A DNA stretch of 64,000 bases from Somniosus microcephalus (lineage: Eukaryota). Below, piece after piece: positions 443 to 57,772 of this stretch. Position 1 is the stretch's first letter. Each line of letters opens with the position of its first letter. The notes under the pieces are model-generated. The model saw only the letters and a program-made list of their open reading frames with translations. It made no database searches and was not told the DNA's origin. The translations under genes were made by a program, and so were the position numbers. The stretch is taken from the NCBI GenBank assembly GCA_052327205.1, contig CM126204.1, positions 261,516,001 through 261,580,000 on the forward strand, written 5' to 3'.

Positions 443-1349
443 GCCTCATTAATGCAACTTTTAAAGGAGAGAAAAGTGGCCTGACTTTCAGAGGAAATGG
501 CAAGATCAAGCGAGAGCTCACCAACATTACATTTAGTCTTCGAACGAGGGACTCGAATGCTGTCATACTCCATGCTGAAAAGGAGCAAGACTTTATCACA
601 GTTGGTATCCAGAAGTGCTATTTAATATTTATGATACAAAGTGGGAATAACCTGGGCAACCTGAGCCTACTCAGCTCAACAGCAATAAGCGATGGTCTCT
701 GGCATGACATTACTTTTTTCATGATAGATCCCTTACTTCAGTATTCCAGGTGGCAGATGGAGATAGACAAGAAAGAAGAGACTGTGACCAGTGCAGTTGT
801 CAGTGGGAACCTGAACTTTCTGTCAGAAGGAACAGACATTTATCTAGGGAGTGGAGGTCCTGAAAAAAGAGCCAGCCTCGCAGGATGCCTGAACACGATG
901 AAACTTGGTGGCATCACCTTATCATACTTTGCAAATGATAATATGCACATTATCAAACCTCAACGAGACCAATTTATCAAAACATCCTCCAATTCCGTAT
1001 TATTGGGCTGCCCAATGAAGAACATTTGTGTATCCAATCCGTGTAAAAACAATGGGAGCTGTGAGGACATGGTTAGTTATTATCAATGTAGCTGTCCTTC
1101 AGGCTGGACAGGCCTGAACTGTGAAGTCAACATCAATGAGTGTCAGTCAAGTCCATGCATTCATGGCAACTGCACTGACAAAGTCTCAGCATACAAATGT
1201 ATATGTAAACCTGGCTTCAGGGGCACTAATTGCGAAGTGAACATAGACAACTGTCGAAAGCACAAGTGTGTAAATGGAGCTACGTGCATTGATGCCATAG
1301 ACAGTTACTCATGTAGTTGTCCTAATAACTTCACTGGAAGATTTTGTGA
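443..1349 (+). CDS. CRB1: CRB1 internal coding exon (equivalent of human exon 9): third laminin-G domain plus three EGF-like repeats
   Basis: Acceptor ttttaaatacAG|gc at 441-442 and donor tttgtga|GTaagt at 1350; 907 nt. Translation (..[61 protein letters not shown]) is collinear with human CRB1 as recalled ([45 protein letters not shown]). The ORF-track start at 397 is intronic. Confidence 0.96.
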
Positions 1350-7307: not shown

Positions 7308-7433
7308 ATATCCTAGATTATCTTCTACATTCTGCATTGATGAGAAGAAAAATTGGACCTGTTATAATGGGGGAAATTGTACTGATGGGCAGAATACAAG
7401 GTGTCTCTGCCCAATAGGATTCATTGGAAGACG
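7308..7433 (+). CDS. CRB1: CRB1 coding exon (exon 10 equivalent), EGF-like repeat
   Basis: Acceptor ttttctttgtcatAG|a and donor acg|GTaagt; 126 nt, phase 2/2, compatible with both neighbours. Encodes [41 protein letters not shown], similar to human [31 protein letters not shown]. Not in the ORF track. Confidence 0.93.
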
Positions 7434-9465: not shown

Positions 9466-9592
9466 ATGCGAAGTCGACATTGATGAATGTGAATCGGGCC
9501 CTTGTCTCAACGGAGGTTTCTGCCAAAACTTGCCCAATAAGTTTCACTGCATCTGCGACATGAGTTTTGCCGGTGACCGCTGTGAGTTTGAT
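9466..9592 (+). CDS. CRB1: CRB1 coding exon (exon 11 equivalent), last calcium-binding EGF repeat
   Basis: Acceptor catcctgcAG|a and donor gat|GTaagc; 127 nt, phase 2/0. Encodes [42 protein letters not shown]. Confidence 0.95.
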
Positions 9593-9703
9593 GTAAGCGA
9601 TTTCTCCTTTTTCATCTCTTTATTACTCTGGCAGCATCTTTTTCAGCTTCTCTCCTACTTCATACTACGAATGGATGATGAACCAGCAATTGAGTGGGGT
9701 TGA
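9593..9703 (+). CDS. CRB1: Alternative CRB1 C-terminus by read-through of the exon-11 donor (CRB1-B-type tail)
   Basis: In-frame continuation [36 protein letters not shown] closely resembles the human read-through tail as recalled (VSSLSFYVSLLFWQNLFQLLSYLILRMNDEPVVEWG..). AATAAA follows at 9724-9729. Confidence 0.88.
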
Positions 9704-13944: not shown

Positions 13945-14935
13945 CAACAACAACTTGTATTTATATAGCGCCTTTAACGTAGTAAAACGTCCCAAGGTGC
14001 TTCACAGGAGTATTAAAAGATAAAAAATTTGACACCGAGCCACATAAGTAGAAATTAGGGCAGTTAACCAACAAAGAGGTAGGTTTTAAGGAGCGTCTTA
14101 AAGGAGGAAAAAGAGGTAGACAGGCGGAGAGGTTTAGGAAGGGAATTCCAGAGCTTAGGGCCTAGGCAACAGAAGGCATGGCCATCAACGGTTGAGCAAT
14201 TATAATCAGGGCTGCTCAAGAGGGCAGAATTAGGAGGAGTGCAGATATCTCGGGGGGGGGGGGGGAGGAGTTTACATAGGATATACGGCACAAAAACAGG
14301 CCATTTAGCCAATCAGTCCATGCCGGCGTTTATGCTCCACACGAGCCTCCTCCCGTCTTTCCTCATCTAAATCTATCAGCATAACCCTCTATTCCCTTTT
14401 CCCTCATATGCTTGTCTAACCTCCCTTTAAACTATTCACTTCAACCACTCCCTGTGGTAGCGAATTCCACATTCTCACCACTCTTTGGGTAAAGACGTTT
14501 CTTCTGAATTCCCTATTGGATTTCTTGGTGACTATCTTATATTGATGGCTTCTAGTTATGCTCTTCCCCACAAGTGGAAACATTCTCTCTGTATCCACTT
14601 TATCAACATTTTTCATAATTTTAAAGACCTCTATTAGGTCACCCCTCTGCCTTCTTTTTTCAAGAGAAAAAAAGAGACCCAGCCTGTTCATCCTTTCCTG
14701 ATATGTATACTCTCGCATTTCTGCTATCATCCTTGTAAATCTTCTCTGCACCCTCTCCAGTGCCTCTGTATCCTTTTTATAATATGGCGACCAGAACTGT
14801 ACGCAGTACTCTAAGTGGGGTCTAACCAAGGTTCGATACAGGTTGTGGGGCTGAAGGAGATTACAGAGATAGGGAGGGGGCGAGGCCATGGAAGGATTTG
14901 AAAACAAGGATGAGAATTTTGAAATCGAGGCAGTG
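13945..14935 (-). mobile_element. L2-like / SINE-tail repeat interrupted by the CR1 fragment
   Basis: caacaacaacttgtatttatatagcgcctttaac..aaaacgtcccaagg tail and LWNSLPK motif. Collinear with the uninterrupted copy at 2163-2680 on both sides of the insertion. Confidence 0.75.
14272..14841 (-). mobile_element. CR1-clade LINE 3' fragment nested inside an L2-tail element
   Basis: Encodes LYRTLVRPHLEYCVQFWSP..GDLIEVFK..FTQRVVRMWNSLP. The host element resumes at ~14842. Confidence 0.88.
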
Positions 14936-20374: not shown

Positions 20375-21348
20375 TATTACTTTCAATCTTTTTAAACGTT
20401 ACCTCTACTTATAATGTTAATACATTTATAATGTTTTACCAATTCTCTATTTTATCATCATTAAAATAAAAATTTGTCTCACTGCAGATCTGAATTAATT
20501 TTTGGAAAAGCAGAGTTACAAAAGGTCTGGAAAAGTGTATGATTGGCAATGAGATTTTCAGCATACATACTTTGTAGATGAATCATAGTGACACTCACTC
20601 AATTACGAATGATGAACATTTTGAATTTCTCTAACTTAGCTAGACAAAATTGGGGGAAAAAGTTTGAATATTTGACCTAAATGTATTTGATTAATCTCTC
20701 ATTCACTATGCTTTTTGGGAACTACTGGTAGCGAGTTCAGATGTGTTTATCTATGATTGTATATTTAGCAATATCTTTGTGGAACTACAGTGCTACAAAG
20801 ACATCCTAGGGTACTTAACCTGTGGCTTGAAAAATCCACTGAGGGATAACAATGAGTTTTTGTTCAGAATCAGTTTATTGTCACCTTGATATATATAACT
20901 GAATAATATATATTCAGAGATGACTTTTAATATAAAATAACACTGGTATTTGTTCTGGGGGAAAAAAAACTCAAGTAGATTTTTTGGATAAAAATGTAAG
21001 ATTGTTTTTTAAGGCCAGCCAAAGACAGCAATGGGGGCCTAACAATAGATTACACCATAGGTTAAGGTATTAGCTGCAGGGTTCAGGTGTGGCTGTAACC
21101 TGAAACTGGAGGCAGGTATCGCACGGCGTCTGATAGAAATTGCTAGTTTTCAAAAGGTACAGGCAGAAACTACCAGCAAAGCAAGAAGCCAGTCTAACTG
21201 CATAGAAAAAAGGGACTTATTTGCAACCAGCCTCAACGTCTTTTTAATTTGAATTAAAAAGACTCAAGTTCCCAGGACCGATCTCTTCAGGAATATCACT
21301 TGAAATTTTGGAATTGCTTTTCAAGTTGTAGAGCAATGCTCTGTTAGA

Positions 21349-21430
21349 ATGGAAAAACGACTGCTCCTGGGCTTTGGCTGGTTGTCGGTTACAGTACTTT
21401 TACTAAAGCGAGGATCTTTGCTCACACAAG
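21349..21430 (+). CDS. Nested CRB3-like gene, coding exon 1: signal peptide
   Basis: ATG (agaATGg, A at -3 and G at +4) opens MEKRLLLGFGWLSVTVLLLKRGSLLTQ: basic N-region, hydrophobic core, polar C-region. Donor caag|GTaaac in phase 1 matches the phase-1 acceptor at 29229. Confidence 0.72.
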
Positions 21431-22485
21431 GTAAACCTGTGCTTGCTAAAAATAAAAGGAAGGTGCAGAAATAGAAATGTATCTTTTCTCAGACTGTGCT
21501 GGATAAAACTAGCCCAGACCTAATGTGTTGCTATTTTTAGATTGGATAATTATATCTGAAGTCTGTCAAATCTAAATATGTAATGGATCATCGATGCAAT
21601 GCTGGGAACAAGGGCAGTTTTTATGACTGAAATGTTTAGTATGTTTAAAGATTGGATTGAGGTGATGCTTTTACTGTTAATGGATATGGTTTTATTGGTG
21701 CATGATGCATGAGTCAAGGAGACTAAATGTGAAGAATACAGAAAGGAAAAGATCAGTAGTTTTAGTGGTCAAAGAGAAAACAACCACTGTTGTCTTCAGT
21801 TTCCCAGTATAATCAAAATACTATTATTTCCTGAAGAGGAGTTTGTACTAAATAATAAACTTACCAGTTAATAACTGAGATAAAAAGTATACTGACATAA
21901 TATTTAAAATGACAATGCCACTCACAGTAAAATGTAAAAATTATAATACTCAAACTGGGATAAATGAGAGAAAATAGGAAGTACTATGATAATTGTAAAT
22001 GGGATTTCCTTTGGGAAAAGGTGATTCAGATACATCTGAAAACATGTCAGATCTGTGCATTAACCCTTTTTCTCATAAAGCAATTGAAATTAATTCTTCC
22101 AGGGGGTTCCAGGGTTGTAAAAAACTGACTCCATCACAGCTGTCAGAACATTGCATGACACATAAGAACCAAAATGGCAGTGGGACATAAACCTGCTTAA
22201 AGATGTTGTACGGTGCTGTATCAAAACTGTCCGCAGGCAGAACAATATAGTTGAGGAAATAAATGATCCAGAATTGATTTAATCTTGGGTGCCACTGCAT
22301 TGTTTGCACATACTTGTGAAACAATCGAATGCATAACTATGCCAATTCCCAATCTGAATATGTAACTATGCCAATTTAACTTCTAAGAAGTAATTTTATC
22401 ATACAGGTGTCTCTGGGGCAATGATTTACATTTTCTAGTTACTCATACGATATATAAGCCATCAGAACTTGTCTTTTGTGGTGCA

Positions 22486-22835
22486 TAAGAAATAGGAGCA
22501 GGAGTAGACCATTTGGCACTTCGAGCCTGTTCCGCCATTCAATAAGATCATGGCTGATCTTCTACCTCATCTTCACTTTCCTGCACTATCCCTATATCCC
22601 TTGATTCCCTTAATATTCAAAAATCTATTGATCTCTGTCTTGAATATACTCAACGACTGAGCCTCCACAGCCCTCGGGTAGAGAATTCCAAAGGTTCACC
22701 ACCCTCAGAGTGAAGAAATTTCTCCTCATCTCAGTTCTGAATGGCCGAGCCCTTATTCTGAGGCTGTGACCCCTGGTTCTAGACTCCCCAGCCAGGAGAA
22801 ACATCCTCCCTGCATCTACCCTGTCAAGCCCTGTT
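22486..22835 (-). mobile_element. CR1-clade LINE 3' end fragment
   Basis: Reverse complement of the tail at 25440-25799 (cataagaaataggagcaggagtagaccat..aagatcatggctgatct). Confidence 0.8.
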
Positions 22836-23299
22836 TTACTTCACATTTTGCCGCACTTCAGTTTCCTTCTTCCTCTGCTACACTTTGTTCTCATTTGGAT
22901 ACAGTTGTTTCGTAGTCTCTGCAACGTATTTTTGAAAGTATTTATCCTCTGTGCGCCTCTATTTGTGTATCCAGCCTAGTTCTCACCTCAACCCTCAAAA
23001 TGCACTCCCTAAACTTGAGACTCTCTGATGTACTCTTCCCTTTCTTTATCGCAAGCCTAACTTTATGCTCTACAACGCTATGATTGCCGTTTTGAAAATG
23101 CTCACTATAACCTCCAGTATCAAATCCAGTATCATTCCAGCCCATGTCGGCTCCCTACCATTTGAGACATGTTATGTCAGTATCAGTTGTCCCAAAATAT
23201 ATTTTCATTCTCATTATAGATCTCTGGAGAATTCAAATCACCAACAATTACATTTGATCTTTAACACTTCACGTATCTGAGTATTAAGTTCCAAATCTA

Positions 23300-23900
23300 G
23301 TATCTCTTCTTGGTATGGTGGGTCATAACAGATCCAAATTAGTTAATATTTTTCCTTTTTATGTCACTTACATTGATCCACAATAATTTCACTTTTTCTG
23401 AACCCAGTCTAGATTCCTCACTCTCCATGAACGTCACGTCTTCTTTCACATAAAAAGCCACAGCTCCCCTCAATTCATCTTTTCTATCTCTTTGGAGCAG
23501 TTTATATCTTTGTAAATTCATCACTATACAGCCCAGCAATTCATTACTTCCCCTTGTGGTTATTTTCTTATAATCTTCTTGTATCACTATGTACTCCTCC
23601 TCTCTCCTGTACCACAACATCTGGCTTCTGTTTCTTTTCTAGTTCTAGCATTCACTAATCCCTCCCCTCACCCCCCCCCCCCCCTTACTAATTTACCGCC
23701 CCCACTTCCCAATGTACCTTTCCTGCAAGGACATTAATAGCAGTCCAATTCAGGTGAATGCTGTCCCCTTTGAACAGGCTTCCCTCGCCCCAGATTGTGT
23801 CCCAATGCCCTAGGTATCTGAAACCTTCCCTTCTACGCCACTTTTCAAGCCACATGTTCACACATCTAATTTTTTTCACTCAGGCCATGGATTCAGCAGT
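23300..23900 (-). mobile_element. Degraded CR1-clade LINE fragment (ORF1 esterase-like region and start of endonuclease)
   Basis: WLEKWRRREGFRYLGHWDT..DSIHLNW (SGNH-like ORF1) and RDRKDELRGAVAFYVKE (APE-like) remnants. Confidence 0.6.
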
Positions 23901-24611
23901 ATTTCCGAGATTGTTACCCATGAGGTCTCTCTATTAAATGTAGCACCTTACTCCTCAAGCTCACCTTTAGACCTCCATCCTACTCTTTCCTAGGACACTG
24001 GTTCCTATATGAACCTTGACTCCCGGTTGTTTTCTCTCCGATTCCAAGAGTTTTTTTTTCCAGCTTCTGCACAACTTTCCCGATCTTGGATCCCAGGAAG
24101 GAATGTATCATTCACGATTGCCAGTAACCTTTTATGTGGCACCTTATCGAAATAGGAATCCCCCATAACTATCTTATGAATAATCTCACTTGTCTGGATG
24201 GGTATCACCTCACTCCATATAGCTTGTCCTGTGTTACAGACTGTAACAAGCCAACCTTTGAGCTCAGTATTTTTCAGCTAGAGCTACACATGTCTTTCAC
24301 CTGTACTCTTCCAAATCCAGGCAGAGTATACCATGCATGTTGCACACTTCACAAGTGTGGCTTCGGACCTTGCCATTCCTGTGTTCAGGGCTATAATGCT
24401 TCTTGGAGTTACTGTCCTTATGTTATGCTCTCTATGGCCTCTTGCTCCTCCTTACCAGCTTAACACAATGCATAAATGATTTTCATAACTTGACTTACCT
24501 TAATATACTAATTTAGCACACTCTTTTGAATAGCCTTCCCATTTTAATATAATAGATAATATAATTATCTTTAAAACTGCCTTGTGTACTTAATATATCA
24601 CCCCTCATCAA

Positions 24612-25799
24612 TTTTGGATTTCCAGAAGGCATTCGGTAAGGTGCCACATAAAAGGTTACTGCATAAGATAAGAGCTCACGGAAGTGGGGGTAATATATTA
24701 GCATGGATAGAGAATTGGCTAACTAATAGAAAGCAGAGTCGGGATAAATGGGTCATTTTCCAGTTGGCAAACGGTAACTAGTGGGATGCCACAGGGATCA
24801 GTGCTGGGGCCTGAATTATTTACAATCTACATTAATGACTTGGATGAAGGGACCGAGTGTAATGTAGCCAAGTTTGCGGATGATACAAAGATGGGTGGGA
24901 AAGCAAGTTGTGCAGAGGACTCAAAGAATCTGCAAAGGGATATAGACAGGCTAAGTGAGTGGGCAAACATTTGGCTGATGGAGTATAATGTGGGAAAGTG
25001 CGAGGTTATCCACTTTGGCAGGAAAAATAAAAAAGCAAACTATATTATTTAAATGGAAAGAGATCACAAAATGCTACAGTTCAGAGGGACCTGGGGGTCA
25101 TTGTGCATGAAACACAAAAAGTTAGCATGCAGGTACAGCAAGTAATCAAAAAGGCAAATGGAGTGTTGGCCTTTATTTCAAGAGGGTTGGAGTATAAAAG
25201 CAGGGAAGTCCTGCTACAACTGTACAGGGTATTGGTGAGACCACAGCTTGAGTACTGCGTACAGTTTTGGTCTCTTTATTTAAGAAAGGATATACTTGCA
25301 TTGGAGGCAGTTCAGAGACGATCCACTTGGTTAATTCCAGAGATGAGGGGGTTGACTTATGAGGAAAGGTTGAGCAGGCTGAGCCTATACTCATTGGAAT
25401 TTAGAAGAATGAGAGGTGATCTTATTGAAACATAAGATACTGAGGGGGCTCGACAAGGTAGATGCAGAGAGGATGTTTCCCCTCGTGCGGAAATCTAGAA
25501 CTCGGGGGCACAGTTTCAGAATAAAGGGGCGCCCTTTTAGAACTGAGATGAGGAGGAATTTCTTCTCTGAGGGTCGTAAATCAGTGGAATTCTCTGCCCG
25601 AAAGAGCTGTGGAGGCTGGGTCATTAAATACATTTAAGTTGGAGATAGACACATTTTTGCAAGATAAGGGAGTGAAGGGTTATGGGGAGTGGGCTGGGAA
25701 GTGGCTTTGAGCCCAAGATCAGCCATGATCTTATTGAATGGCGGAGCAGACTTGAGGGGCCAACTGGCCTATTCCTACTCCTATTTCTTATGTTCTTAT
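24612..25799 (+). mobile_element. 5'-truncated CR1-clade LINE (RT C-terminal part plus 3' tail)
   Basis: Frameshifted LDFQKAFGKVPHKRLL, PQGSVLGP, FADDTK, LVRPQLEYCVQFWS and RRMRGDLIE motifs. Ends in the tatgttctta-type tail. Confidence 0.92.
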
Positions 25800-28143
25800 A
25801 ATAGTGCAGTCAAAATGCTAACTGATTAACCCAAGGATTAAGATATATAAAATAATGCTAAATTATTAAGAAATTCATGCACATTGGGAACTGGTGGTTT
25901 ATTGAAAGTAAATCACTCATTTGCAGCAACATAACTCACAAGGCTTGTGGACTTCCTATACACCATCAGTCTCTAGTATATGTCCTCCATGAAACATCAA
26001 AACAGTTTTTAGGCATCTCTATGCACCCACTGAAATGTTCAGGAAACGTAAGGACAAGGATCTGTGCCACTTACTAATCTCCGATTGAGGGAGATTGGTC
26101 TCCACATTGGAAAGATATGTTCGTCACAAGTGTAGTAAAAGTGCATGAAACAGGCCCTTGTGTAACCTGTAACTGAGAGTTAAAACATTAACAGCACATC
26201 AAAGAAAGCCAAATAAAAAGGAGAGGCAATAGGAAGATTCCCTGAAAGTTTAAAGGAAATGAATCATTCATTCATCTTAATGCTGTGCAACACCCACTCA
26301 AGCTATATATGGAGAACTCTTAACAGGCAAAATAAAAAAAGTAAAGTTCTTTTATGATTAAACAAATCAAGAAAAATTTCAATGTTTTCCACTTTAACCA
26401 GAATTTAAAAAGGTACTTTACTGTATAATTTCCGGTCAAATAAGTGAAATATTCTTTAAAAAAAAATTACCTTGCAGGCCTAGAATACTTGAAGGGAGGA
26501 TTTCATTTTCAATGAGTATTAGGGTAGCACACTGTCTAACAGGCATTCCGACAGACACCACATTTATATCAATTCAGGTACAGCAAAAGACATGGTAATG
26601 TGTTGCTTGCATCAGCCTGAGTACAATGTACTATGAGGAACTCTGGGACAGCCAATGACTATGCGGATGCAGCTGCCCACACTCGCTCAGCTCCTGTGTA
26701 GGCCTAGGCACAAAGGAAGGCTGGGATTATTCAACTTTTCTCTCTGAAAACATACAATTTTTGAAGGGAAAAAAATCCAAACATAGAAATTGTTGCACTG
26801 CGCTGAATCCATTTATTAACCATTCTGCCATTAATAAGTAGATCTTGGCAGGACAGCTCTTTACCCTGTTAAGTCCTAAAATAAACTATGTTTCAGCTTT
26901 CAAAAAGGGATAGTGCAATTGCTAAAAATAATCTTTGAAACACACTTAATCAGACCCATGCTGAGTAGAACATGGGAATTTCTAGACAGGGTCCGTCTAG
27001 TTTGCCGTCTACCATCCTGGTAGTTGCACGATACAGCAAAAATGAAGATGTTGATTAATCATATGATGACCTGACTGACTGAATACTGCACTTTCAGATA
27101 AAATGAAGATACACGAATACCTCAGAGTGACTGAGGGTAACCTCATGTAACAGGTTGCATCATACACATCAACCCAGCAGCTAATCCTTCAATGACAAAT
27201 GCCAACACAACCAAACTAAGAAAGCTCCTTCCTTGCTCACAAAAGATCCAACTGAACATCAATAACTGACGCTCACGGCGCTGTTTCAGGAAATTGAGAA
27301 TAAGATCAGTCCTTCAATAACAGTTCTGCAGTGGAGTGCAATTAATTTTAAGGTGTACTGTCTTTAAGAAAAACAATGTTTGGAAAGCTTTCTCCTGTTT
27401 ATTGGAAAAGAGAAGACCCAGAAGAGGGGCTCATTCTGCTCCAACATTGTTATGTGTCACTAATGCAGTAACATATTTTGTCTTGGTTTACCTTACTGCA
27501 TCGTGTGTTTTCAATGAATCAAACAAAACAGGCTTGCCAGACATTTTTCCCATGAAGATGATATTCCTTGACAAGCTTACAAAGGCAGTGGTTAGTTTCT
27601 GTAGAACTGGCTTTCTAGGATTAGATCCTGGTATTGGTCTTCTTAACACCCATGTTTAAGCTTTGTCTACACTCAGCTGTTTTGCATTAGAGGGAGCCTT
27701 GATTTGCCCATCATTATTAGTTACTTTGCTGCATGGAACTAACACTTTTGTTCTGCATCTCAGCCTCTGCAGTCTTAGAGCAAGTTATGCCCCTATTGTA
27801 GGTCAGCTATACTTGAGCTCCTACAAAATAACGTGAATTGTATCAGTTCAGCTTTTTGCACCAGGTATTAGACCAATTGGAGATATTTTCAAACCATTTG
27901 GCTTTCCCATTGGCTGCAGTTGTAACTGATGTCAGGCCAGCATTATAAGCTAAGTTTGAAAAGACACCACTTAGTTCACTCGGCCACCTTCGGGTTTCTA
28001 ATATTAGTAAAGAGTTGGCAACCGCATTAGCTTTTCTTCAGTATTAGAATTTCACCAGCAGCTGAGGACCAATGAAGAGTTGGACGTTTGGTACTAATGC
28101 ATAGAGGGCAACCTTGCCTGACTAGGGGGCGGGGGCAGTAGAT

Positions 28144-28983
28144 TAGGCTGACCATACATCCCCATTTTCCAGGGACAGTCCCCGGATTAGGTACCGTGTC
28201 CCTGGGCAAACACCGTCTCCGGAAGTGTCCCCGGTTCAGGAAACTCATCCCCGAATACAGCCATATTCATTGGCCCACTGGTCGGCAGGAGTTGGGTAAA
28301 CACGAATGTTCAGAAACCCAGGGGGGAGCTTCTCGTCCTATTCACACCCGGTTTGAGCTCAGGAACGGAATCCAGGAGCCGGTTGAATGGAGGCGATGAT
28401 GACAGCCCCGACTTCCCACAATGCAGCGTGGTGGAGAATCGGCTCCAATTATAGCTCGAGCTGCCTTGCACTCTGGGAGATTGAGTCACCTGACCCCATG
28501 TTTTGGCCAATAGTGACTGGCCGGAGGGCGGAACCTTTAAAGTGTGCGGGAGAAGCCAAAGGCGCAGTGTGAGCTGGTGAGTGAGTGGATTTATTTTACC
28601 TCACAGCTCAGTAAGGAGCATTGTGTTGTTTTTTAAGGAATAAGGCAAGCTCTAAATTATCCCACCGGAAAGAGGATTCTGAAACCTTCTGAGACAGAGG
28701 GTGTTTCACACATTATATGGAAAATCTCAGTCTATTTGGAACAGATTTAAAATTGAGAAATTAAAAGTTAGGATATTCGGGGACGAGTATAGCTGGTACA
28801 GCACTATTACCAGAACAAAAGCAAGATTCAAGATTCGGTGTAAAGTGAAAATGGTGTTGTCTCTACGTGTGTTCCACTAGCAGAAGTTCATCTTGCCGGC
28901 CTTCTTGAAAAGCGTCCTGGCTACTTTGCTGTGCTCCCACCCTGTGTGTCCCCGCATTCACTTTAGAAAATATGGTCACCCTA
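28144..28983. mobile_element. Non-autonomous hAT MITE (Blackjack-like termini)
   Basis: TIRs TAGGCTGACCATA and TATGGTCACCCTA (12/13 match). 8-bp TSD CAGTAGAT / CAGTAGAC (7/8). Subterminal GTCCC/GGGAC repeats. No transposase ORF. Confidence 0.85.
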
Positions 28984-29228
28984 CAGTAGACCACTCTGGT
29001 TCACACACTTTCATTGTAAATGCAGGTATCTGCTACATCGGCGAAGCTCACTTCAGGGGTTAGCAGCCGCTCACTGGCGCAGAAGCATTTTAAATTATTT
29101 ACTGGGTAATCCTTCACTTTGACAGAGAAAAGTTGGTGATTTGTGTTTAGTATTGGGTAGATTTGTAACAAGTTACAAATTTTCAACATTTCAGTACCGT
29201 CTTCATGTTAGTGTTGGTTCCTTTACAG

Positions 29229-29281
29229 CGGTGAATGTAACAGATCCTACACAATCAACAAATGCTGATAGCACATCATCT
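29229..29281 (+). CDS. Nested CRB3-like gene, coding exon 2: short Ser/Thr-rich ectodomain with N-glycosylation sequon
   Basis: Acceptor gttggttcctttacAG|cg and donor tct|GTaagt; 53 nt, phase 1/0. Encodes (A)VNVTDPTQSTNADSTSS with an N-V-T sequon, like the mucin-like CRB3 ectodomain. Confidence 0.8.
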
Positions 29282-30592
29282 GTAAGTTGATAGATTTAAC
29301 TTGACCTAATGTTAATATAGACTATGGTTTCAGTCTAACTCAACTTTTAAGGTACAATTCACAAAGGATTTAGTAAAAACTGCTTCTGTAACACCACAGT
29401 TTCATCTTTGAAATCTCAATTGATCTTCCAATTATCACTAATAGGATACTGTTAGATTAATACCATGATCAATGCTGCAGCTATTAAGAATCCTTTTCAA
29501 TTAAAATGAAGACAAATTAGTGCAATTATATGCATTATCCTGGTAATGCATCCATGTAGAAGTGCCACTTGAGAGAACCCAACTGCAGTTTCGAAACCTT
29601 TCGTGCTTTTGTTGTGGAAATGCTTCTGATATAGAAGGGCATGGTTTTCAATAACAAGCATTGAATTAGATACAAAAATTAATAATTCATTATGCATGAA
29701 ATATTACATTAGGCTTTAATCTAGAACTAGTCCATTGTGTGATCAGTGTTACATAACTGTGGAAGCCTGGGTCAGATGCATACAGATAAGGCAGTGAAGT
29801 TGTAGTAGTCCAGCAGATCTAGTGATAAAACAGTGGACGCCATTGCTGCTGACCTGGGCTCAAATTCTAACCTCAGTTGGCCTTTCATCTCAGCTAACCC
29901 CCCAAATAAAGAGTTTCAGCAGTTCTCAACCAGACCACCTTGTGGTTAGTGGAGTGGCCCCAATCTCAGGGGAAGGGTCGTATTGCAGCCTGGATAGCAT
30001 GCCCATCAGCTGGTATGCAGTAGATGTTGTGCTGAAAGTGGACATGGGGCGAGTCCACATTAGACCACCATCTCACCACTCTCTCACGTAAGAAAACAAC
30101 AGGAAGGCAGTTGAAATGAGGATGTAAAAGTGAATTTTTATTTTAAACAACAGGGAAGTTGTATGTATTTATAAAAGATGTAAGTTTTAAGAAGTATACA
30201 TGTAGTTGAGGGCAGTGGAAACACATGACCTGGTGGCATTGTAGTCATTGAATTATCCAGCACAGAAGGCAGCTATTCGGCCCATCGTGCCTGTGCCGGC
30301 TCTTTGAAAGAGCTATCCAATTAATCTCACTCCCCTGCTCTTTCCCCATAACCTTGCAAATTTTTCCTTTTCAAGTATTTATCCAGTTCCCTTTTGAAAG
30401 GTACTATTGAATCTGCTTCCACCGCCCTTTCAGGCAATACATTCCAGATCATCATAATTTGCTGCGTAAAAAATAAGCAAACTGAAAAAAATGAATCAAG
30501 TTGGGCTTTTAACTCATAGGCACTGGCTAGATTAAAATATGTCCCATTTGTGTGAGGCTTTCTAATAATAAAAATGCGAATTATTTTCACAG

Positions 30593-30814
30593 ACAAATCC
30601 GCCACCAAACAAAGTAAACATAGCAGCCATTGTGGCTCCCTGTGTGATTGGTGGGGTGATAGTTCTAGCTATCATTCTGACTTTTCTAATTCTAAAACTG
30701 CGTGAGAAACGTCAGACTGAAGGGAACTACAGCCCAAGCAACCAGGAGCAGACTGGATCTCGGATGGAAATGAACAATACCCTTAAACTGCCGCCAGAAG
30801 AGCGCCTTATCTGA
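30593..30814 (+). CDS. Nested CRB3-like gene, terminal coding exon: TM helix, FERM-binding motif and ERLI PDZ-binding tail
   Basis: Acceptor ttattttcacAG|aca, phase 0. Encodes [90 protein letters not shown] and [10 protein letters not shown] match human CRB3 rather than CRB1. Confidence 0.92.
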
Positions 30815-31055
30815 TATGTTCAGGCTCTGGGACGCACAAGACTTGGGGTGTTATGGTGGAAGGAGTAGGAGAAGTCAACAGATTCCAGGTATTCCCCCTG
30901 TTACTCAACAAGTTAGGAGGAAGAGTAACGTCACGAAGCTGTGCAACTCCAAGTGTATGTGTGTGCACGTGTTTTCTTTAAACCACGGCAGCTTCAAAGC
31001 TAACCCTGTGTGGGTTATCCTTAAACTGTTTAACCGTTTTGACTCTTGTCGACAG

Positions 31056-31271
31056 GATGTGGAAACCTGGACCTCAGAGATTCTGCTGTATATTGGGTTG
31101 GTCACCGTGGCGTTGTTGCTCCTTTTCTTTCTAGTCCTCACTGCCTCCGTTGTGACCCTGAATAAAAGAGCAACGCACGGGGCGTACAGCCCAAGCCAGC
31201 AGGAGAAGGAGGGATCGCGGGTGGAGATGTGGAACATGGTGCACCCACCCCAGGTGGAGAGACTTATCTGA
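31056..31271 (+). CDS. CRB1: CRB1 canonical terminal coding exon (exon 12 equivalent): TM plus FERM-binding and ERLI tail
   Basis: Acceptor gactcttgtcgacAG|gat, phase 0; 216 nt. Encodes [71 protein letters not shown], close to human [52 protein letters not shown]. Confidence 0.96.
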
Positions 31272-31679
31272 ATGAACCCTGAAGCTTGGCAAATCGTTTC
31301 TACGTATGGTGGTATATCATTGCTGTATGTACAGGCCGAGGATGCCATCCTATTCAGCGTGCCACAAGGAATGCTTTAGCTCGGATTGAAAGTTTTTAAA
31401 AGTGTAGTTTAAATCAATTGATTTGCCAAGTTGTTGCCTGAACAGTCCGAAATACCATTAAAAAATTGCTCCATTTTAATTCTCCCTTTCCGCAAAACTG
31501 TCAACAGAAAATGATTTACAATACAAGTATGTAATTCACGTTCTGAATATAGAACACGCACAAATACAGGAAGAAGATAAACCATTCAACTATACAGAGA
31601 TGGATGGCCCTAGCTTGGAGGTTTCAGAAAAGGTAAAATGCCCATGTAACTCCTCCTCTTCATTTAGGGAGCACTTTTA

Positions 31680-31685
31680 AATAAA
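31680..31685 (+). terminator. First canonical AATAAA after the CRB1 stop (candidate proximal polyA signal)
   Basis: AATAAA about 410 nt after the stop. Further AATAAA hexamers occur downstream (e.g. 38074-38079), so the real 3' end cannot be determined from sequence. Confidence 0.3.
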
Positions 31686-31802
31686 AACAAGATCATAGGC
31701 AATGGAGCTTTGAACTCCTCCCTGTGAAATATGGCAATAGAACCAATTGTTTATAAACATAGGAATAGTGCTAATAACTCTTATCCTTCCTTCTGTGATA
31801 GT

Positions 31803-32076
31803 GGCTTGGAGTTTGCGCTATGTTGCGATTTTTTTTCAGCACAAAAGATTGCGGAATTTCAAGCGCAGCTTATGTCCAGCGCAAATCAAGTTGCCGTGAT
31901 CTTTTGCACTAGTTTAAAAAACATTGCGCTAGAAGCTGACAGACTTTAAGTTTGGCGATAGGCAAATGAGTTTGAGCAGAAACTTGGAAAAAAAAAACAC
32001 GTCTCAAAACTAGCACAATTTTGGGCACAATTTGCACCCGGATTGCCGATTGCGCCCAAAGTGGAAACTCTACCCC
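31803..32076. mobile_element. Small MITE-like element downstream of the CRB1 stop
   Basis: Imperfect inverted ends ggcttggagtttgcgct and aagtggaaactctacccc; CpG-rich relative to the flanks. Confidence 0.45.
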
Positions 32077-33566: not shown

Positions 33567-34005
33567 CATAGAATTTTACAGCACAGAAACAGGCCATTCA
33601 GCCCAAAATGTCTGTGCCAGAGGCTATGCTCCACACGAGCCTCCTCTCACTCTCCTTCATCTCACCCCATCGACATATCCTTCTATTCCTTTCTCCCTCA
33701 TGTACTTATCTAGCTTTCCCTTAAATGCATCTGTGCTATTCGCCTCAACCACTCCATGTGGTAGTGAGTTCCACATTCTCAACACTCTGAATGAAGAAGT
33801 TTCTCCGGAATTCCCTGTTGGATTTGCTGTTACTATTTTATATTTATAACCCCCTACTTTTGGACAACCCCACAAGTGGAAACATCTTCTCTACGTCTAC
33901 CCTATTGAACCCCTTCATAATTTTAAAGACCCCTATTAGGTCACCTCTCAGTCTTCTCTTTTCCAGGGAAAAGAGCCCCAACCAGTTCAGTCTTTCCTGA
34001 TAGTA
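33567..34005 (-). mobile_element. CR1-clade LINE 3' fragment
   Basis: LGLFSLEKRRLRGDLIGVFKIMKG and MWNSLP motifs on minus; homologous to 10490-10935. Confidence 0.85.
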
Positions 34006-36711
34006 TGTCCTCTCAATTCTTTTGGCTAAATTGACAATCTCACTCAAGGGGACCACAAGCATGGCTGGTGTGAGAACTGGAATTGTCCACCTGGAAACAT
34101 CAGAGGAGAGGGTGAAGAGAGAGCACTCTACTGAGTTTGGGCCAGAGCAGAGGAATTGTTACTCAGCATCTAGCTTTTCTGTACGTGAGCTGGGGGTGTT
34201 TGATGTTGACATTGGGAGATAAAAGTGAAAAAGTCTTCCATTTACTAAACACAAAAGAAAAAAAATCATAAAGTTGAAATTTTAGAAGTATGCAGTGGAC
34301 GCACCTACATATTTGTTTGACATGAATTCAAGAGTATTTAGGGTACTGCAAACTAAATGTAACATGGGCCACAAAGAAAATGAAACTAGACAGTGAGCAA
34401 GTCTTGATCCTGAATGATAGTACTCACAACAGCCATAAAATCAATGATGCCATCTATTTTGTCACAAGATTTTGTTCTTCAGATATAAATAGGCTAATTT
34501 AAAAGGTTATAATCTTGTGAATTAATTCAAAGAATTAGCACATTTTTGGAGAGGACCATGTTCTTGACAAAATGCTTGGCAAACCTTTATTAATCAAAGG
34601 ATGATGAAATTATGTAAATCGTGTTGACGTGCACCATCGTGTCACTTGTGGGTGACATTGTGACCAAAATGATATACAACTTTTTGACGACTTGGCCTCT
34701 GCAAATAAAAAGGTATTTGACAAATGTTTTCTAAAGATAGTGGAATATAAACAGAAAATGCTGGAAACACTCAGGTGGTCAGGCAGCATCTGTGGAGAGA
34801 TGGTTCTTTAACAAAACAACTCTCTTGTGCTTTGTTTAAAATGAAACAGTTAAAATGTTTAGTTAAATTAACCAATTCCTTTATTTACAAGCAAGAAAAA
34901 ATAGGAACTTAAAATTACGTTAAAATACATCCAAATTGTTGAATTCTATATCCTAGTGTTGGGGCAGTGTTCTCACTCCTAAAACTTTCTAAGTGCGTTA
35001 GAAAACTAGGAAATGGCAAACCTGCTTGGATTCTGGTTGTAAGTGTTAACAGTATTTTAATAAATGTACCCAACGCATTGGAATGTCACTAAAAGCTTTT
35101 TGTCTTCTGTTGTGAGCTAAGTGTTTTCAATGTATTAAGTGAAAAAGAAAAATAGCTGTATGTATTAAGTGTATGATTCCTACTTATAGCACGTTACTTG
35201 TCAGTATTACAGAGGTCACCAGTTGCCTGTGACTAAATCTGGTCAACTTAGTGTAAACAATGAACAGAAGCAATTCCCAAGGTGGGGCAGGAATAAATGA
35301 GTATACTGTAAAATCACCTTGATTTTGGATTAGTGATTGCAGACTGTTCGTTTTATATTTGTTAGCTGATCATGAATAGAAAGGCATTTATTTCCACACT
35401 GATTTTCTGAATGCATTGGATTGAAAACGTAGGCCCTGAAATGAAACTGCGGGATACTAGTGTATAAATGTTTAATGTACTAGTGTCCAAATGGTTAATG
35501 TCTATTTTAGGGGAGATATAAATCTATTAAAAAAATTATACCTATGCTAAAATAACAGGAATTTCAGATGAGCAGACTAAGTGTTCAAACAGTAGGATTC
35601 CGCTGCCATAGTTTAAAGGTAAAATATATATGTTGACTTTTTGCGCGCCTTACTGGAAGATTGTGATTGTTTTAAGTTTGGTAGCTGTGCTGTTCATTGT
35701 CAATTAGTCACATTGTTCAGATATTTTTCAGTCAAGTTAGGATTTCATTAGCCTGTGGTTATACAATTTGTATAGAAAATGAAAACAGTGGGCAACTCTT
35801 TTCAATCTTTGGCAACAATTTACCAAAGCTGCAATACTATAAAACAAGTCATTTCTTGTGGCTGTTGTTCACCAGACTGACATGTTTTTGTATTTTTACA
35901 TGCTGTTCCATCAAAACTGCTCTACTGACTGATAGTAATATTGGTGTCATTTCTTCATGCATCTGGGCATAGTTTGGCACTATATTTTAACTAGTCATGC
36001 AATGTACGCAATTGAAATCAAAATCCACTATTTCCCCTAAAATGGGTGAACTTGATGAACATTATATTTTAAATAGAAATTTATACTCAACATATTTTAA
36101 ACCATTCATGAATCAGTCAGATTGAAAAATGTTCAAAACCATTGTGATTTTAGGCGCCAGGCTCTTTACTCTGATCCTATGATGCAGGGATAAAATTTCA
36201 CTATTCATTCACAAACATCAATCTTGGGGCAAGTCATCTGAGAGAATAGTTCAGCGGCGGATGGGTTGAAGGAGTATGAAAACATGAACATATGTTATGA
36301 GAAAATATTAATTATTTGGAAAACATTTCTACTGTGAATTTAACTGACACTTTGTGAAGTTATGGTCAGAATTAGCAGGGTGATAAATTCTATGTTTAAA
36401 TGTTCATTTCTATTATACTTACAAATCTGCCATGATGAGTGTTTTCACTGTAGCAGAGAAAAAGGGAATATGAAAAGAAACAAGATTTATCTATTTATGA
36501 CAGCCAGCTTCTTACTTGGGTTTTCATCTTTTTTTCTGTAGTATTATAGGGGTTGTATGGCAGTCTCTGCCCTGGGGTTACATGGTTGAATAGCACCAGC
36601 TATAGGACATAATCTTGAAGATAGATCCACTGAAATATTATTAAATTAGATGCCTTTAGTCATTTCATTTTTTTCGCTCCTAGTTTTCAGATAGAAATCT
36701 TCCGTTGTTTA

Positions 36712-40549: not shown

Positions 40550-42747
40550 TAGGGTTGCAAAGGGGTGGAAAGTTTCCGGTAAATTTCCAGAAATTTTCCA
40601 CGGGAAGTTTAGCTTGGGAATTTTGCCCAAAAAAGCATATGCTAGCATAATATTGTTTTTTTTGTATTTCTTTCTTTTTTTCCCCCACAGGTCCTCTCTT
40701 AATAATTAAGATTCCATCTCTGTTAGTAATTTTAAGGAATTTCTTAATCAATATATGTTTATCTTCTTACTTGACTTGTTTTAATAATTACAAGTTTTGT
40801 GTGTGACTGTGAACAAGTGTGTCCTGATTGGTTGGATGAGTGGATGAGCGATTAGCTCCCTCTATTTGTAATATTTGCATATCGAATTGTGATTGGCCTG
40901 CAGGCATCTGTAAGACTGCTATAGTTTTTTTTAAGATCCAGGTTAGGGGACCTGAGGGAAGTCATTTTGTTTTCTGCTGATGTGATGATGCAGTAAGTAA
41001 ATCAGACTTTATACCAAATAAACCAGTTACTTGTTGAACTCTGTTGTCCTTCAATTTAAAATATACAAATTAATACACTATTGGTGATGTAGCATCGTGT
41101 GTGTACAGGTCATGCTTCCATCACATGGAGCATCAGCAAAAATGTACTCACCCTGTTGCAATCATGCTGATCGACCGCAGTTCGACACAGAGATGAATGC
41201 CCTTTATTTCTCTGCATAGAACAATGCCACATTTACCGTCGGATGTGTGGAAGCATTTTACCCCAGGCATTAAAGATGGAAAGACTGTGTACATGTGCAA
41301 ACACTGTAGAAAGCCATATGTAAAGAATGCCACAAAGATGCAGCAGCATTTATCCAAATGCAACAACTTCACTCATATTACGTCTATTGGGTGCGCAGCT
41401 CATGGGCTTAACCTGCTCAAGGACATCATGGGTTTGAGAACCATGGAAGCACTGTACAAGAGAGCCAAGCAAGTTGTTAAGTATGTCAGGGGAAAACAGG
41501 TAGTTGCAGCAACCTACAACTCCAAGCAAATGACAAAGAACAAGAACACCACACTGAAGCTGCCCAACAACACTAGATGGGGTGGTGTTGTCATAATGTA
41601 CAACAGCCTTCTGGAGGGTAAGGAGTCGCTGCAAGAAATGGCAATATCCCAGTCTGGGGATATGGAAACCACCATCAAGAAAATACTGCTGGATGATGTG
41701 TTTTGGGAGAGAGTGGTTAGCAGCCTTAAACTACTCTCACCAGTAGCATCTGCAATTGCTCAGATTGAAGGAGATGACGCTGTCTTGTCAGATGTTCTCA
41801 GGCTTTTTACTGATTTAAAAGAACAAATCAGCATTGCCCTACCCACATCCCTGCTGCTCAAAGCAGAGGAGAAGGCAATTGTTCAATTCATACAGACGCG
41901 TCAAGAAATTTGTGTCAAGCCGATTCATGCTGCAGCATACATGCTGGACCCAAAGCATGTTGGGAGACCAAAACTTTCTGGAGAACAGATCAACAGCGCT
42001 TACAGTGTGATTTCTACCCCCTCACACCATCTCAATCTGGATGTGGGCAAAGTTCTGGGAAGTCTGGCAAAGTTCTCTACCAAGCAAGGTCTTTGGAATG
42101 GGGATGGGATATGGGAATCATGCAAGCATATCAGTGCACATACCTGGTGGAAGGGACTTTGTGCATCTGAGGCCCTGTCACCTATTGCATCGGTGATACT
42201 CCAAATCCCACCTTCATCAGCGGCCTCTGAACGAAACTGGTCACTTTTTGGGAATACGCATACAAAGGTGCGCAACAGGCTGACTAACAAGAGAGTGGAG
42301 AAACTGGTGGCTATCCAGGCGAACCTACAACTTATTGAGCCAGATACAGAAGTGTCCACCACACAGCTAGACACTGACACAGAGGAGGAAATGGACACGT
42401 CAGAGCCAGAGAATCAGGAGGAGCAATGAGGAGTAGAAGAATCAGAAGACTCATGAGTAGAAGACTCAAAGGGACAAAATAAGGACAAATTACAGGCTAA
42501 ATAAGCTGACGCTCTTTTTATTTTATTTTAGATGGGTCTTTTTTGTGGGGGTTCAATAAAGTTCAAAATTATAACCTAAATAAAGTTTTGAAAGCCTGTT
42601 TTTATTTGTATGGAACAGTATGTCTATTTTGAGGACAAATATAAGGGTCAGAGACAAAAACCATCAGTGTGCAAAAAAACTCAAAATTCCCATAAATTCC
42701 CATGGAAAGTTTCCTCTTTTAAAAATTCCCAGAATTTTGCAACCCTA
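40550..42747 (+). mobile_element. hAT DNA transposon, internally deleted
   Basis: Perfect 12-bp TIRs TAGGGTTGCAAA (40550-40561) and TTTGCAACCCTA (42736-42747). Perfect 8-bp TSD GCTGAGAT (40542-40549 and 42748-42755). Subterminal GGAAA/TTTCC repeats. Confidence 0.95.
41197..42429 (+). CDS. hAT transposase-derived ORF (BED zinc finger, CxxH, C-terminal hAT dimerisation domain); N-terminal catalytic segment missing
   Basis: SDVWKHF..CKHC..H..C BED finger joined directly to CAAHGLNL. Also TRW, WWK and SSAASERNWS..KVRNRL motifs. 410 aa with no stop. Confidence 0.85.
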   Translation: MPFISLHRTMPHLPSDVWKHFTPGIKDGKTVYMCKHCRKPYVKNATKMQQHLSKCNNFTHITSIGCAAHGLNLLKDIMGLRTMEALYKRAKQVVKYVRGKQVVAATYNSKQMTKNKNTTLKLPNNTRWGGVVIMYNSLLEGKESLQEMAISQSGDMETTIKKILLDDVFWERVVSSLKLLSPVASAIAQIEGDDAVLSDVLRLFTDLKEQISIALPTSLLLKAEEKAIVQFIQTRQEICVKPIHAAAYMLDPKHVGRPKLSGEQINSAYSVISTPSHHLNLDVGKVLGSLAKFSTKQGLWNGDGIWESCKHISAHTWWKGLCASEALSPIASVILQIPPSSAASERNWSLFGNTHTKVRNRLTNKRVEKLVAIQANLQLIEPDTEVSTTQLDTDTEEEMDTSEPENQEEQ

Positions 42748-47708: not shown

Positions 47709-48257
47709 CTAAGTGTTGGTAGTGGAAGCACCAACACTGGAAATAGTGTGACCGGTTTCAATTCTGGAACATAAACAGTCGATCTCTTTGAGTAGGTCTA
47801 TTTCACCTGTGGGTTCTAGCAATTCAGCCTCAACAGCGTCTTTCTCCCAAGGGATTAAAACGGATGGGTATTTTGGTGTATTTTGACACTGCTCTTCGTA
47901 GGTACCGTCTCCACTGGTTAGTGTTTGCTTTGGCTCCTTTAGTTTGGCTGAAATCTTTTTCTTCTGCTTTGATTCTTCACTGGAGGCAAGGGTTGCCACT
48001 GAAGCTTTAAAAGACGAGTCACTATTGAGTTTCGGAAAATTTGTCAACTCTTCAACAAACACACAGGAGTTTTCAGAAGATGTCATTTCAAAGGTAACCG
48101 GACATTCAGAAAAATAACAAAATGATTTCCTTGGAGATGGGGGAAGGGGCTTTCTATGGACAACAGTATCATCTTGTCCCAGGTGCCAACTCAGATGATC
48201 ACCATACCCTACACCAAGTTCAGCCAGGTTTCCCTCACTAGGAGTATTGAACTTGTT
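47709..48257 (-). CDS. DENND1B: DENND1B terminal coding exon
   Basis: Minus-strand acceptor ttattttgttAG|aac, phase 0; 549 nt. Encodes NKFNTPSEGNLAELGVGYGDHLSWHLGQDDTVVHRKPLPPSPRK...IPWEKD...EIDLLKEIDCLC...NT*, resembling human DENND1B as recalled (NKSNAPSENNL..WNLGQDD..LPPSPRK..VPWEKE). CRB1-DENND1B tail-to-tail synteny matches human. Confidence 0.9.
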   Translation of the reverse strand, partial: NKFNTPSEGNLAELGVGYGDHLSWHLGQDDTVVHRKPLPPSPRKSFCYFSECPVTFEMTSSENSCVFVEELTNFPKLNSDSSFKASVATLASSEESKQKKKISAKLKEPKQTLTSGDGTYEEQCQNTPKYPSVLIPWEKDAVEAELLEPTGEIDLLKEIDCLCSRIETGHTISSVGASTTNT

Positions 48258-56900: not shown

Positions 56901-57023
56901 GGTAACCCAAATGGTCTGGTAATCTTCTTTGGCAATTACATTATGTAATTTGAGACAGCTTAGTCTCTTGTTTCCGGAGTCGCTATCGCTCTTCTGGTCT
57001 TCGGAGCTACTGTCCGTCATCAT
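53970..57023 (-). pseudogene. Gypsy pol (protease, RT, RNase H, integrase) with an in-frame stop
   Basis: LDTGS protease, RICGDFK and YLDD RT motifs, CDAS RNase H, HHCC and integrase core (HIDFAGP, SDNGPQF, NGLAERFV). A premature TGA at 56055-56057 (YQYN*LVCGVASAPAIWQ, probably CGA>TGA) splits the two ORF-track entries. Confidence 0.92.
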
Positions 57024-57772
57024 TTGTACCTTTCTGTACTTTTCCTTATTGATTTTTTTCTGTCAGTGGATTTTTTGTTTCCAGATCGGCATACACGTGC
57101 AATGTGTCCCATCTTTCCGCATTGCCTGCATGCTTTGTCCTTGAACCGGCAGTCTCTCTGGTCATGGGTGGATCTGCCGCAGCGATAACATCTCTCGAAA
57201 CCCCGTGTCATTTCATGGGTGCCGAAGTCCTGTGGCTTTTGCTGTATCTCTGCAGCTCCTCTTGCTGCTGCTTCGTATGATACAGCCACACTGAAAGCCT
57301 TGCCCAGTGTCAAATCTTTCTCAGAAAGTAGCCTTTTCTGTGTTCCTTCACTTAGGAGACCGCAGACTAATTTGTCTCGTAGAGAATCTGCCAGTCCTGC
57401 CCCGAATTGGCAGTGCTTTGACAGCTTTCTTAATTCGGTGAGGTAATCAGCGTTACTTTCATTCTTGTGCTGATTCCTGCTGAAGAATTTGAATCGTTCC
57501 GCTATCAGCAGCGGTGTTGGGTTTAAGTGCTCCTGTAGGGTATCAACAATCTCCTTAAAATTCTTGTCCATCGGTTTGGCTGGAGTGATTAAGTTTCGTA
57601 ACAGCCCGTATGTCCTTGCGCCCATCAGATTTAGAAGTACCGATGCCTTTTTATCATCCTCTACTTCATTCGCTGTGCAATATACCTCCACTCTTTCCAC
57701 ATATGTGGCCCAATCCTCTGTATCACTATCGAAAGCAGTAATATCGCCAGTCTTAGGCATCCTGAAAATCAA
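57020..57772 (-). pseudogene. Gypsy gag with two CCHC zinc knuckles
   Basis: CYRCGRSTHDQRDC and CRQCGKMGHIARVC knuckles. The frame changes near 57020-57060 before the protease. Confidence 0.88.

Follow-up and report, generated by a model that had tools for sequence, protein, structure and literature searches.

A probable CRB3-type minimal Crumbs gene with its coding exons in the last CRB1 intron of the shark Somniosus microcephalus

The 64,000-nucleotide (nt) stretch of Somniosus microcephalus DNA analysed here (assembly GCA_052327205.1, contig CM126204.1, positions 261,516,001 to 261,580,000 of the forward strand; the window, whose own numbering is used throughout) carries exons of a CRB1-type Crumbs gene. 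Within the last intron of this gene, and on the same strand, lie three coding exons that very probably constitute a real, conserved and expressed minimal Crumbs gene of the CRB3 type. This reading is carried by the exons themselves, by their conservation among cartilaginous fishes, by a spliced joint between the second and third exons, and by the continuity of RNA from the third exon into the terminal CRB1 exon and its 3′ untranslated region (UTR).

Coding exons and protein of the CRB3-type unit

Each of the three exons was translated and searched singly. Their coordinates, GT-AG borders and phases (1, then 0), as proposed in an initial annotation, are borne out by the sequence, by the exon-wise translations and by a tblastn search of the window with a Carcharodon model (P0002), which recovered all three exons at 21349-21441 (E 3.5e-8), 29228-29287 (E 6e-4) and 30593-30811 (E 3.7e-43) and revealed no more than two Crumbs tail exons in the window. 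Exon 1 comprises 27 codons plus one base and ends at the donor AAG/GTAAAC (the slash marks the exon border; phase 1), exon 2 comprises two bases plus 17 codons between the acceptor TTTACAG/ and the donor TCT/GTAAGT (phase 0), and exon 3 comprises 73 codons behind the acceptor TTTTCACAG/. The ATG of exon 1 has an A at -3 and a G at +4, with an in-frame stop 16 codons upstream; an AG at 21332-21333 leaves the frame open into exon 1 (Table 1). A retrocopy origin of the unit is ruled out by its introns, 21431-29228 and 29282-30592. Directly 5′ of exon 2, the intron segment 29150-29228 (+) is open in the frame of exon 2 (..SVGSFTA), and its reading matches the alternative N-termini found in Carcharodon isoform X2 (P0261) and a Callorhinchus model (P0004), both of which begin within this extended 5′ part of exon 2 and have no start resembling a signal peptide.

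The three exons contribute 27, 17 and 73 residues, with one further codon split between exons and with a short ectodomain devoid of EGF and LamG domains. A Pfam scan of exon 3 returned no EGF or LamG match and just sub-threshold matches to transmembrane (TM) segments, exons 1 and 2 being too short for such a scan. The N-terminus is hydrophobic, with a hydropathy of 2.15 over the best 11 residues of exon 1 (FGWLSVTVLLL), and exon 1 may encode a cleavable signal peptide, with cleavage probably after ..LTQA. The initial annotation held this signal-peptide exon to be the least certain of the three. Exon 1 matches the N-termini of six chondrichthyan models (the 118-residue ones and a fused model, P0260) with 56-78% identity. 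Exon 2 also matches chondrichthyan crumbs homolog 3-like models, both in alignment and by tblastn. In exon 3, a TM helix with a 19-residue hydropathy of 2.89 is followed by a tail that counts exactly 37 residues and closes with PPEERLI, thus with the ERLI motif. The elasmobranch tails of this nested type read EGNY, whereas the other Crumbs tails compared, including that of the Callorhinchus orthologue, read EGTY, the threonine of which we take to lie within the region phosphorylated by aPKC. The tail includes the juxtamembrane FERM-binding region as it is defined in the excerpted text of PMC5380682. Collectively, these features support the proposal of a complete CRB3-type unit, with a signal-peptide-like exon, a short serine/threonine-rich stalk bearing an NVT sequon, a TM helix and an ERLI tail.

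Membership of the CRB3 family is indicated by similarity. Searched with the 73-residue peptide of exon 3, 18 of 20 candidate proteins matched, and all 18 either bear the name crumbs homolog 3, 3a or 3-like or group with proteins so named. The best match (P0001), a 118-residue NCBI model, shows 97% identity (E 1.4e-37), and the likeness of exon 3 to crumbs homolog 3-like models goes far beyond chance. Five of the 18 are NCBI "protein crumbs homolog 3(-like)" models of 118-121 residues, from Mustelus asterias, Carcharodon carcharias, Narcine bancroftii, Callorhinchus milii and Mobula hypostoma, with 88-97% identity to exon 3; the other 13 represent a second and shorter paralogue, "crumbs homolog 3a", of 87-119 residues and 58-64% identity, on different contigs. 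A cluster look-up added a Hypanus sabinus model as well as further isoforms from Carcharodon and Mobula. Model lengths are 118 residues in Mustelus, Carcharodon, Narcine, Mobula and Hypanus and 121 in Callorhinchus. A profile built from 16 such CRB3-type proteins retrieved 247 family members. Of the usual CRB3 kind, the protein has already been predicted in RefSeq for related species, and the gene is not "hidden", as the initial annotation had it: NCBI lists crumbs homolog 3-like models in Carcharodon (XP_041064320.1), Mustelus (XP_078074271.1), Narcine (XP_069793962.1), Mobula (XP_062919932.1), Hypanus (XP_059840686.1) and Callorhinchus (XP_007893872.1). These models represent the same gene, with the same three-part layout and the above identity in exon 3; they are, however, automatic predictions that lack an account in print and whose protein records do not reveal the position relative to CRB1, whereas the window displays the nesting and the likely shared 3′ end.

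Table 1. Coordinates of the CRB3-like unit, of the 3′ region that it probably shares with CRB1, and of the CRB1 exons in the window
Feature	Position	Strand	Features or evidence
CRB3-like coding exon 1	21349-21430	+	ATG, positively charged start, 15-residue hydrophobic core (signal-peptide-like), phase 1 end
CRB3-like coding exon 2	29229-29281	+	Serine/threonine-rich stalk, NVT sequon, phase 0 end
CRB3-like coding exon 3	30593-30814	+	End of stalk, TM helix, 37-residue tail, stop TGA at 30812-30814
Possible in-frame acceptor just 5′ of the ATG	21334-21348, AG at 21332-21333	+	Matching site used by the fused Scyliorhinus torazame model (a prediction, in another species)
Spacer of 241 nt: probable 3′ UTR of the CRB3-like mRNA and end of the last CRB1 intron	30815-31055	+	X1 record 8 unbroken, depth 34.1
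CRB1 terminal exon as probable part of the CRB3-like 3′ UTR	31056-31271	+	RNA continuity
Shared 3′ UTR (probable)	31272-31900	+	RNA contig extends about 472 nt past 31900
Candidate poly(A) signals	31457, 31680, 32657, 32741	+	Motif scan
CRB1 exon with LamG domain and EGF repeats	443-1349	+	Pfam Laminin_G_2 3.2e-11, EGF 1.8e-19
CRB1 EGF exon, third from last	7308-7433	+	Residues 1-42 of P0260, 81% identity
CRB1 last EGF exon (exon 11)	9466-9592	+	Donor GAT/GTAAGC, phase 0; residues 39-84 of P0260, 87% identity
CRB1 terminal exon: juxtamembrane part, TM, CRB1-type tail, stop	31056-31271	+	Acceptor CGACAG/, phase 0; P0121 residues 112-181 on 31056-31268

Position within CRB1, RNA evidence and alternative readings

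The CRB1 exons at 9466-9592 and 31056-31271 define the last CRB1 intron as 9593-31055, and this intron holds the CRB3-like coding exons on the same strand. The nearest named clusters of the upstream exon at 443-1349 are "crumbs homolog 1-like" and "Crumbs ... component 1" (0.98 each). The terminal exon groups with the CRB1-type tail of a tarpon protein (100/100 in the tree described below) and carries an EMWN tail, presumably typical of CRB1. The partial Scyliorhinus torazame model P0260 strings the two EGF exons of CRB1 to CRB3-like exons 1-3, collinear with the window, so that a catshark shares the arrangement. The nesting claimed in the initial annotation therefore stands for the coding exons, which are flanked by LamG/EGF exons on one side and a TM/ERLI exon on the other; the gene as a whole is probably not confined to the intron, since its last exon appears to run into the terminal CRB1 exon and 3′ UTR. 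A recent local duplication of the last CRB1 exon can be rejected, since the two tail exons have no more than 21 of 35 residues in common, all of them within the tail, and fall into different starred groups of the tree.

RNA was mapped on positions 26000-31900 (5901 bases), from the raw RNA runs X18 and X19, which bear the presumed species label of the window, and from the contig sets X1 and X2, which come from a related species (about 97% alike). The joint 29281>30593 (GT..AG, skipping 1311 bases), which the initial annotation had predicted, is found in one contig of each set, at a depth of 17.3 in X1 and 7.96 in X2. The X2 contig (record 12, 322 nt) lies on 29227-29281 and then on 30593-30850, and it carries nine further upstream letters that do not match the intron, in keeping with an exon lying further 5′. 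X1 depth is zero in the intron bins 29349-30136, and this, together with the spliced joint, indicates that the X1 and X2 contigs are RNA. Within X18, one read lies on exon 3 and one read crosses 31056 unspliced. A repeated element at 30137-30530, in the intron before exon 3, reaches a summed X1 contig depth of about 21,000, with many loose-ended reads and "goes back" joints at 30350.

Downstream of exon 3, X1 record 8 (1789 nt, depth 34.1, about 97% alike) covers 30593-31900 without a break and continues for about 472 nt; it is not broken at 31056, where reads joining CRB1 exon 11 to exon 12 would make a branch. Exon 3 has no donor and no AATAAA or ATTAAA is present in 30815-31055, so that the CRB3-like mRNA most likely runs through the terminal CRB1 exon to the CRB1 poly(A) site. 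On balance, we favour with reasonable confidence that record 8 represents one long terminal exon of the CRB3-like mRNA, with the last CRB1 exon and 3′ UTR as untranslated sequence. An AATAAA at 31161-31166 lies within the coding part of the last CRB1 exon (LNKRAT codons).

We infer the promoter, the signal-peptide cleavage and the protein function of the CRB3-like gene along the following lines. Transcription would start at a putative internal promoter upstream of 21349. Exon 1 would provide the cleavable signal peptide. A stalk of some 26 residues carrying the NVT glycosylation sequon would come from exon 2 together with the first part of exon 3, and the remainder of exon 3 would encode the TM helix and the 37-residue tail with its FERM-binding region and ERLI PDZ-binding motif. 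By analogy with CRB3A, a tail of this kind might recruit PALS1/PAR6-type partners at apical membranes. Long CRB1 transcripts would have to skip all three small exons (9592>31056). In effect, a single compound Crumbs locus would combine two promoters and two alternative TM/tail exons with a common 3′ end.

Several observations weigh against this account. X18 and X19 are nearly devoid of reads on any exon, and expression in the window's own species thus rests on the two X18 reads. The contig sets X1 and X2 are guessed to be RNA, and both derive from a single study of a related species. With the mapping covering 26000-31900, the joint 21430>29229 in this species and the transcription start are predictions, and exon 1 has no CpG island or clear promoter. 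A contig spanning two genes is not proof of a single transcript, which is why the shared 3′ end is held with reasonable rather than high confidence. Moreover, X1 record 8 breaks exactly at 30593, with a depth of 34.1 as against 17.3 for the contig with the exon 2-3 junction. This break and the two-fold depth suggest that 30593 probably has a second upstream partner, be it exon 11 of CRB1, a different first exon or unspliced RNA.

The last point bears on the strongest alternative, namely that the locus is compound and that there is no separate gene: 30593-30814 would also, or mainly, serve as an alternative TM/tail exon of the long CRB1, joined at 9592 and giving it a CRB3/CRB2-type tail, and the 118-residue product would be a short isoform. 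Phase 0 is common to the exon 11 donor and the acceptor at 30593, and the reading stays open across them, so that a CRB1 with a CRB3-type tail is possible; exon 2 read after the exon 11 donor gives R and then an immediate stop. Alternative tail exons are also present in NCBI models of another shark Crumbs gene, the Heterodontus isoforms X1 and X2 described below, and a second partner of 30593, as suggested by the X1 break and depth excess, could be exon 11. P0260, too, joins CRB1 EGF exons to the CRB3-like exons; yet it is a partial automatic model with a signal-peptide-like segment in mid-protein, and the NCBI models in six species begin at the small signal-peptide exon. No long protein with a nested-type tail is present among the 150 listed of 258 phmmer matches, a set clustered at 50% that could hide one. 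In its strict form, in which exon 3 is an alternative CRB1 tail and nothing else, this explanation is ruled out by the 118-residue models and by the exon 2>3 joint, which contradicts a union of 30593 with CRB1 exon 11 alone. In its broader form we regard it as unlikely, though far from negligible.

Less probable still is a fully independent nested gene whose 3′ end lies before 31056, the apparent read-through being an assembly merge of overlapping transcripts or unspliced CRB1 pre-mRNA. It is true that a contig over two genes reveals no single transcript, that the X2 exon 2-3 contig stops at 30850, and that non-canonical poly(A) signals are possible in the spacer. However, the spacer lacks the two canonical signals, its X1 depth of 34.1 compared with zero in bins 29349-30136 argues against pre-mRNA, and the contig is unbroken at 31056, unlike what is expected if CRB1 exon 11>12 reads were common. 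We consider such an independent end improbable.

A decaying, functionless relic of a CRB3 duplicate, to which a degenerate tarpon counterpart (P0121) and the near-zero RNA in X18 and X19 might point, is very improbable and for chondrichthyans already contradicted by the intact frames of all three exons, by the 88-97% identity of exon 3 across sharks, rays and chimaera, by the spliced RNA and by a sole listed exon 3 difference that is synonymous. The last figure derives from a comparison of X1 record 8 with organism A, which differ at 37 positions, 34 of them listed: one of those listed lies in the 222-nt exon 3 (CCG>CCA), eight in the 241-nt spacer and five in the last CRB1 exon. The identity across cartilaginous fishes points the same way as these listed differences, suggesting that exon 3 is under constraint.

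Other elements in the window

The open reading frame (ORF) of exon 11 continues through its donor for 36 more codons at 9593-9703 (+), with a hydrophobic stretch, a short acidic end and a stop. This segment might be an alternative TM tail like that of CRB1-B, a predicted possibility; an atlas search with the read-through ORF returned generic EGF clusters only, at 0.83 or below. The ORF at 30327-30608 (-), 14416-14907 (-), 25103-25637 (+) and 33657-34062 (-) share an end motif and are taken for tails of the long interspersed nuclear element (LINE) type on the strength of that motif; Pfam gave no match for 14419-14907. A 410-residue ORF at 41197-42429 (+) with a BED zinc finger and a hAT dimerisation domain resembles a hAT transposase. 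At 53970-57772 (-), three consecutive long ORFs are of the long terminal repeat (LTR) retroelement type and encode a gag protein with a CCHC zinc knuckle, an aspartyl protease, and reverse transcriptase, RNase H and integrase. The 125-residue ORF at 47709-48086 (-), downstream of CRB1 and on the opposite strand, has no Pfam match.

Relationship to other Crumbs genes and possible origin

In a phmmer scan, 1.84 billion representatives yielded 258 matches, of which 150 were listed. A tree was built from the TM-plus-tail region of 56 hand-picked rows out of 268 stored proteins; with 68 columns, its resolution is limited. It omits most bony-vertebrate CRB3s and all unnamed short matches, and matches reading ...ERLIW..., which look like translation through the TGA stop, were set aside. 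In this tree, the nested type falls within the CRB3-family clade (97/94) and outside the starred clade of shark crb3a and bony-vertebrate CRB3 (98/91); the CRB3 family has the CRB2-type tails as its sister group (97/93), and the terminal CRB1 exon of the window also groups with the tail of Heterodontus isoform X2 (98/92). In approximately unbiased (AU) tests, neither a clade of the nested type with the first part of the tarpon protein (p 0.37) nor a clade of the nested type with shark crb3a, as in a shark-only duplication (p 0.11), was rejected.

The tarpon protein, a 181-residue hypothetical protein of Megalops atlanticus (P0121, KAG7487592.1), was the second best among the phmmer matches listed. 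In this automatic model, a CRB1-type terminal exon continues the frame of a degenerate CRB3-like unit: residues 43-111 align with 30617-30811 and residues 112-181 with 31056-31268, in the same order and with the same exon boundary as in the window. Similar to the shark unit, it has a hydrophobic start, an N-x-T stalk, the TM sequence IIAVIVPCIVG and KVREKRQ.., and then the CRB1-type exon; it differs in that the automatic model fuses both parts in one frame and in that its CRB3-like part is degenerate, with 36% identity, no ERLI, the tyrosine of EGTY lost and the end PPRVERLL. Its end branch in the tree measures 0.99, and a search with its residues 1-110 found P0121 itself only (one of 22 candidates).

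A second comparison comes from Heterodontus francisci, whose two "crumbs homolog 1-like" isoforms X1 and X2 (P0129 and P0266, 1466 residues each) are identical up to GEHCELD and then differ in the terminal TM/tail exon, which is of CRB2 type in one (..EMDSVLKVPPEERLI) and of CRB1 type in the other (..EMWNIMKPPPTERLI). Alternative tail exons, two of them in tandem, have therefore already been modelled in another shark Crumbs gene. This Heterodontus gene is 44% identical to the LamG/EGF exon of the window, indicating another paralogue.

The shark unit resembles mammalian CRB3A, a 120-residue protein that, in the excerpts of PMC5380682, lacks EGF and LamG domains and spans the membrane once; its tail counts 37 residues, contains a FERM-binding region and ends in ERLI, a length and ending described there for CRB1 and CRB2 as well. 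The nested gene is nonetheless probably not the orthologue of mammalian CRB3, to judge from its tail sequence and tree position: it lies outside the clade of shark crb3a and bony-vertebrate CRB3, although on these 68 columns the AU test leaves a joint clade with shark crb3a unrejected, and sharks have a separate crb3a on other contigs. Its tail (YSPSNQE..SRMEM) resembles those of CRB1 and CRB2, whereas the bony-vertebrate CRB3 tail reads YRPSSEE. Human CRB3 is a free-standing gene on chromosome 19, according to the same excerpts.

Internal starts are known from other Crumbs genes. In zebrafish, the shorter form Crb2b-sf has its transcription start in intron 7 of crb2b; in the portion of PMC7044448 that describes it, this form shares the downstream and TM/tail exons with the long form and is drawn with EGF and LamG domains. 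The shark unit, by contrast, has signal-peptide, stalk and TM/tail exons of its own and shares at most untranslated sequence with CRB1. CRB1-B, found in mammals and other vertebrates, uses an internal promoter, unique 5′ and 3′ exons and an alternative TM and intracellular domain; as presented in the excerpt of PMC7335077, it keeps a large extracellular domain and has a tail without conserved Crumbs motifs, whereas the shark unit has no EGF or LamG domain and a canonical ERLI tail. We found no description of a CRB3-type unit nested in CRB1 in the literature searched, a body of text with most subscription journals outside its coverage.

Position and tree together suggest an old origin of the nested unit. 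Tentatively, and with less than even confidence, the shark CRB1 locus may represent an ancestral vertebrate compound Crumbs locus, comprising a long EGF/LamG form, a nested CRB3-type unit with an internal promoter, and tandem tail exons of CRB2/CRB3 type and CRB1 type. After the vertebrate genome duplications, the CRB3 locus would have kept the short unit only, tetrapod CRB1 the long form with the CRB1-type tail only, and CRB2 the long form ending in the other tail. This proposal draws on four observations: the nested type is present in sharks and rays as well as in chimaera; a positional relic precedes the CRB1 tail exon in a teleost, the tarpon; the nested tail groups with CRB2/CRB3 tails and not with the neighbouring CRB1 exon; and the Heterodontus gene has both CRB2-type and CRB1-type alternative tails.

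Epithelial and photoreceptor cells rely on Crumbs proteins to establish their apical side, and CRB1 is one of the major genes behind human retinal disease. Cartilaginous fishes carry two CRB3-type genes, and 3′-end reads or probes on the last exon of shark CRB1 may report the small gene instead of CRB1. We know of no explanation so far for how the 120-residue CRB3 arose beside Crumbs forms of 1400 residues in vertebrates. The nested unit and the teleost relic offer a testable route, in which a short form driven by an internal promoter later became a free gene; the ancestral compound locus, if true, would explain the source of the minimal Crumbs CRB3.

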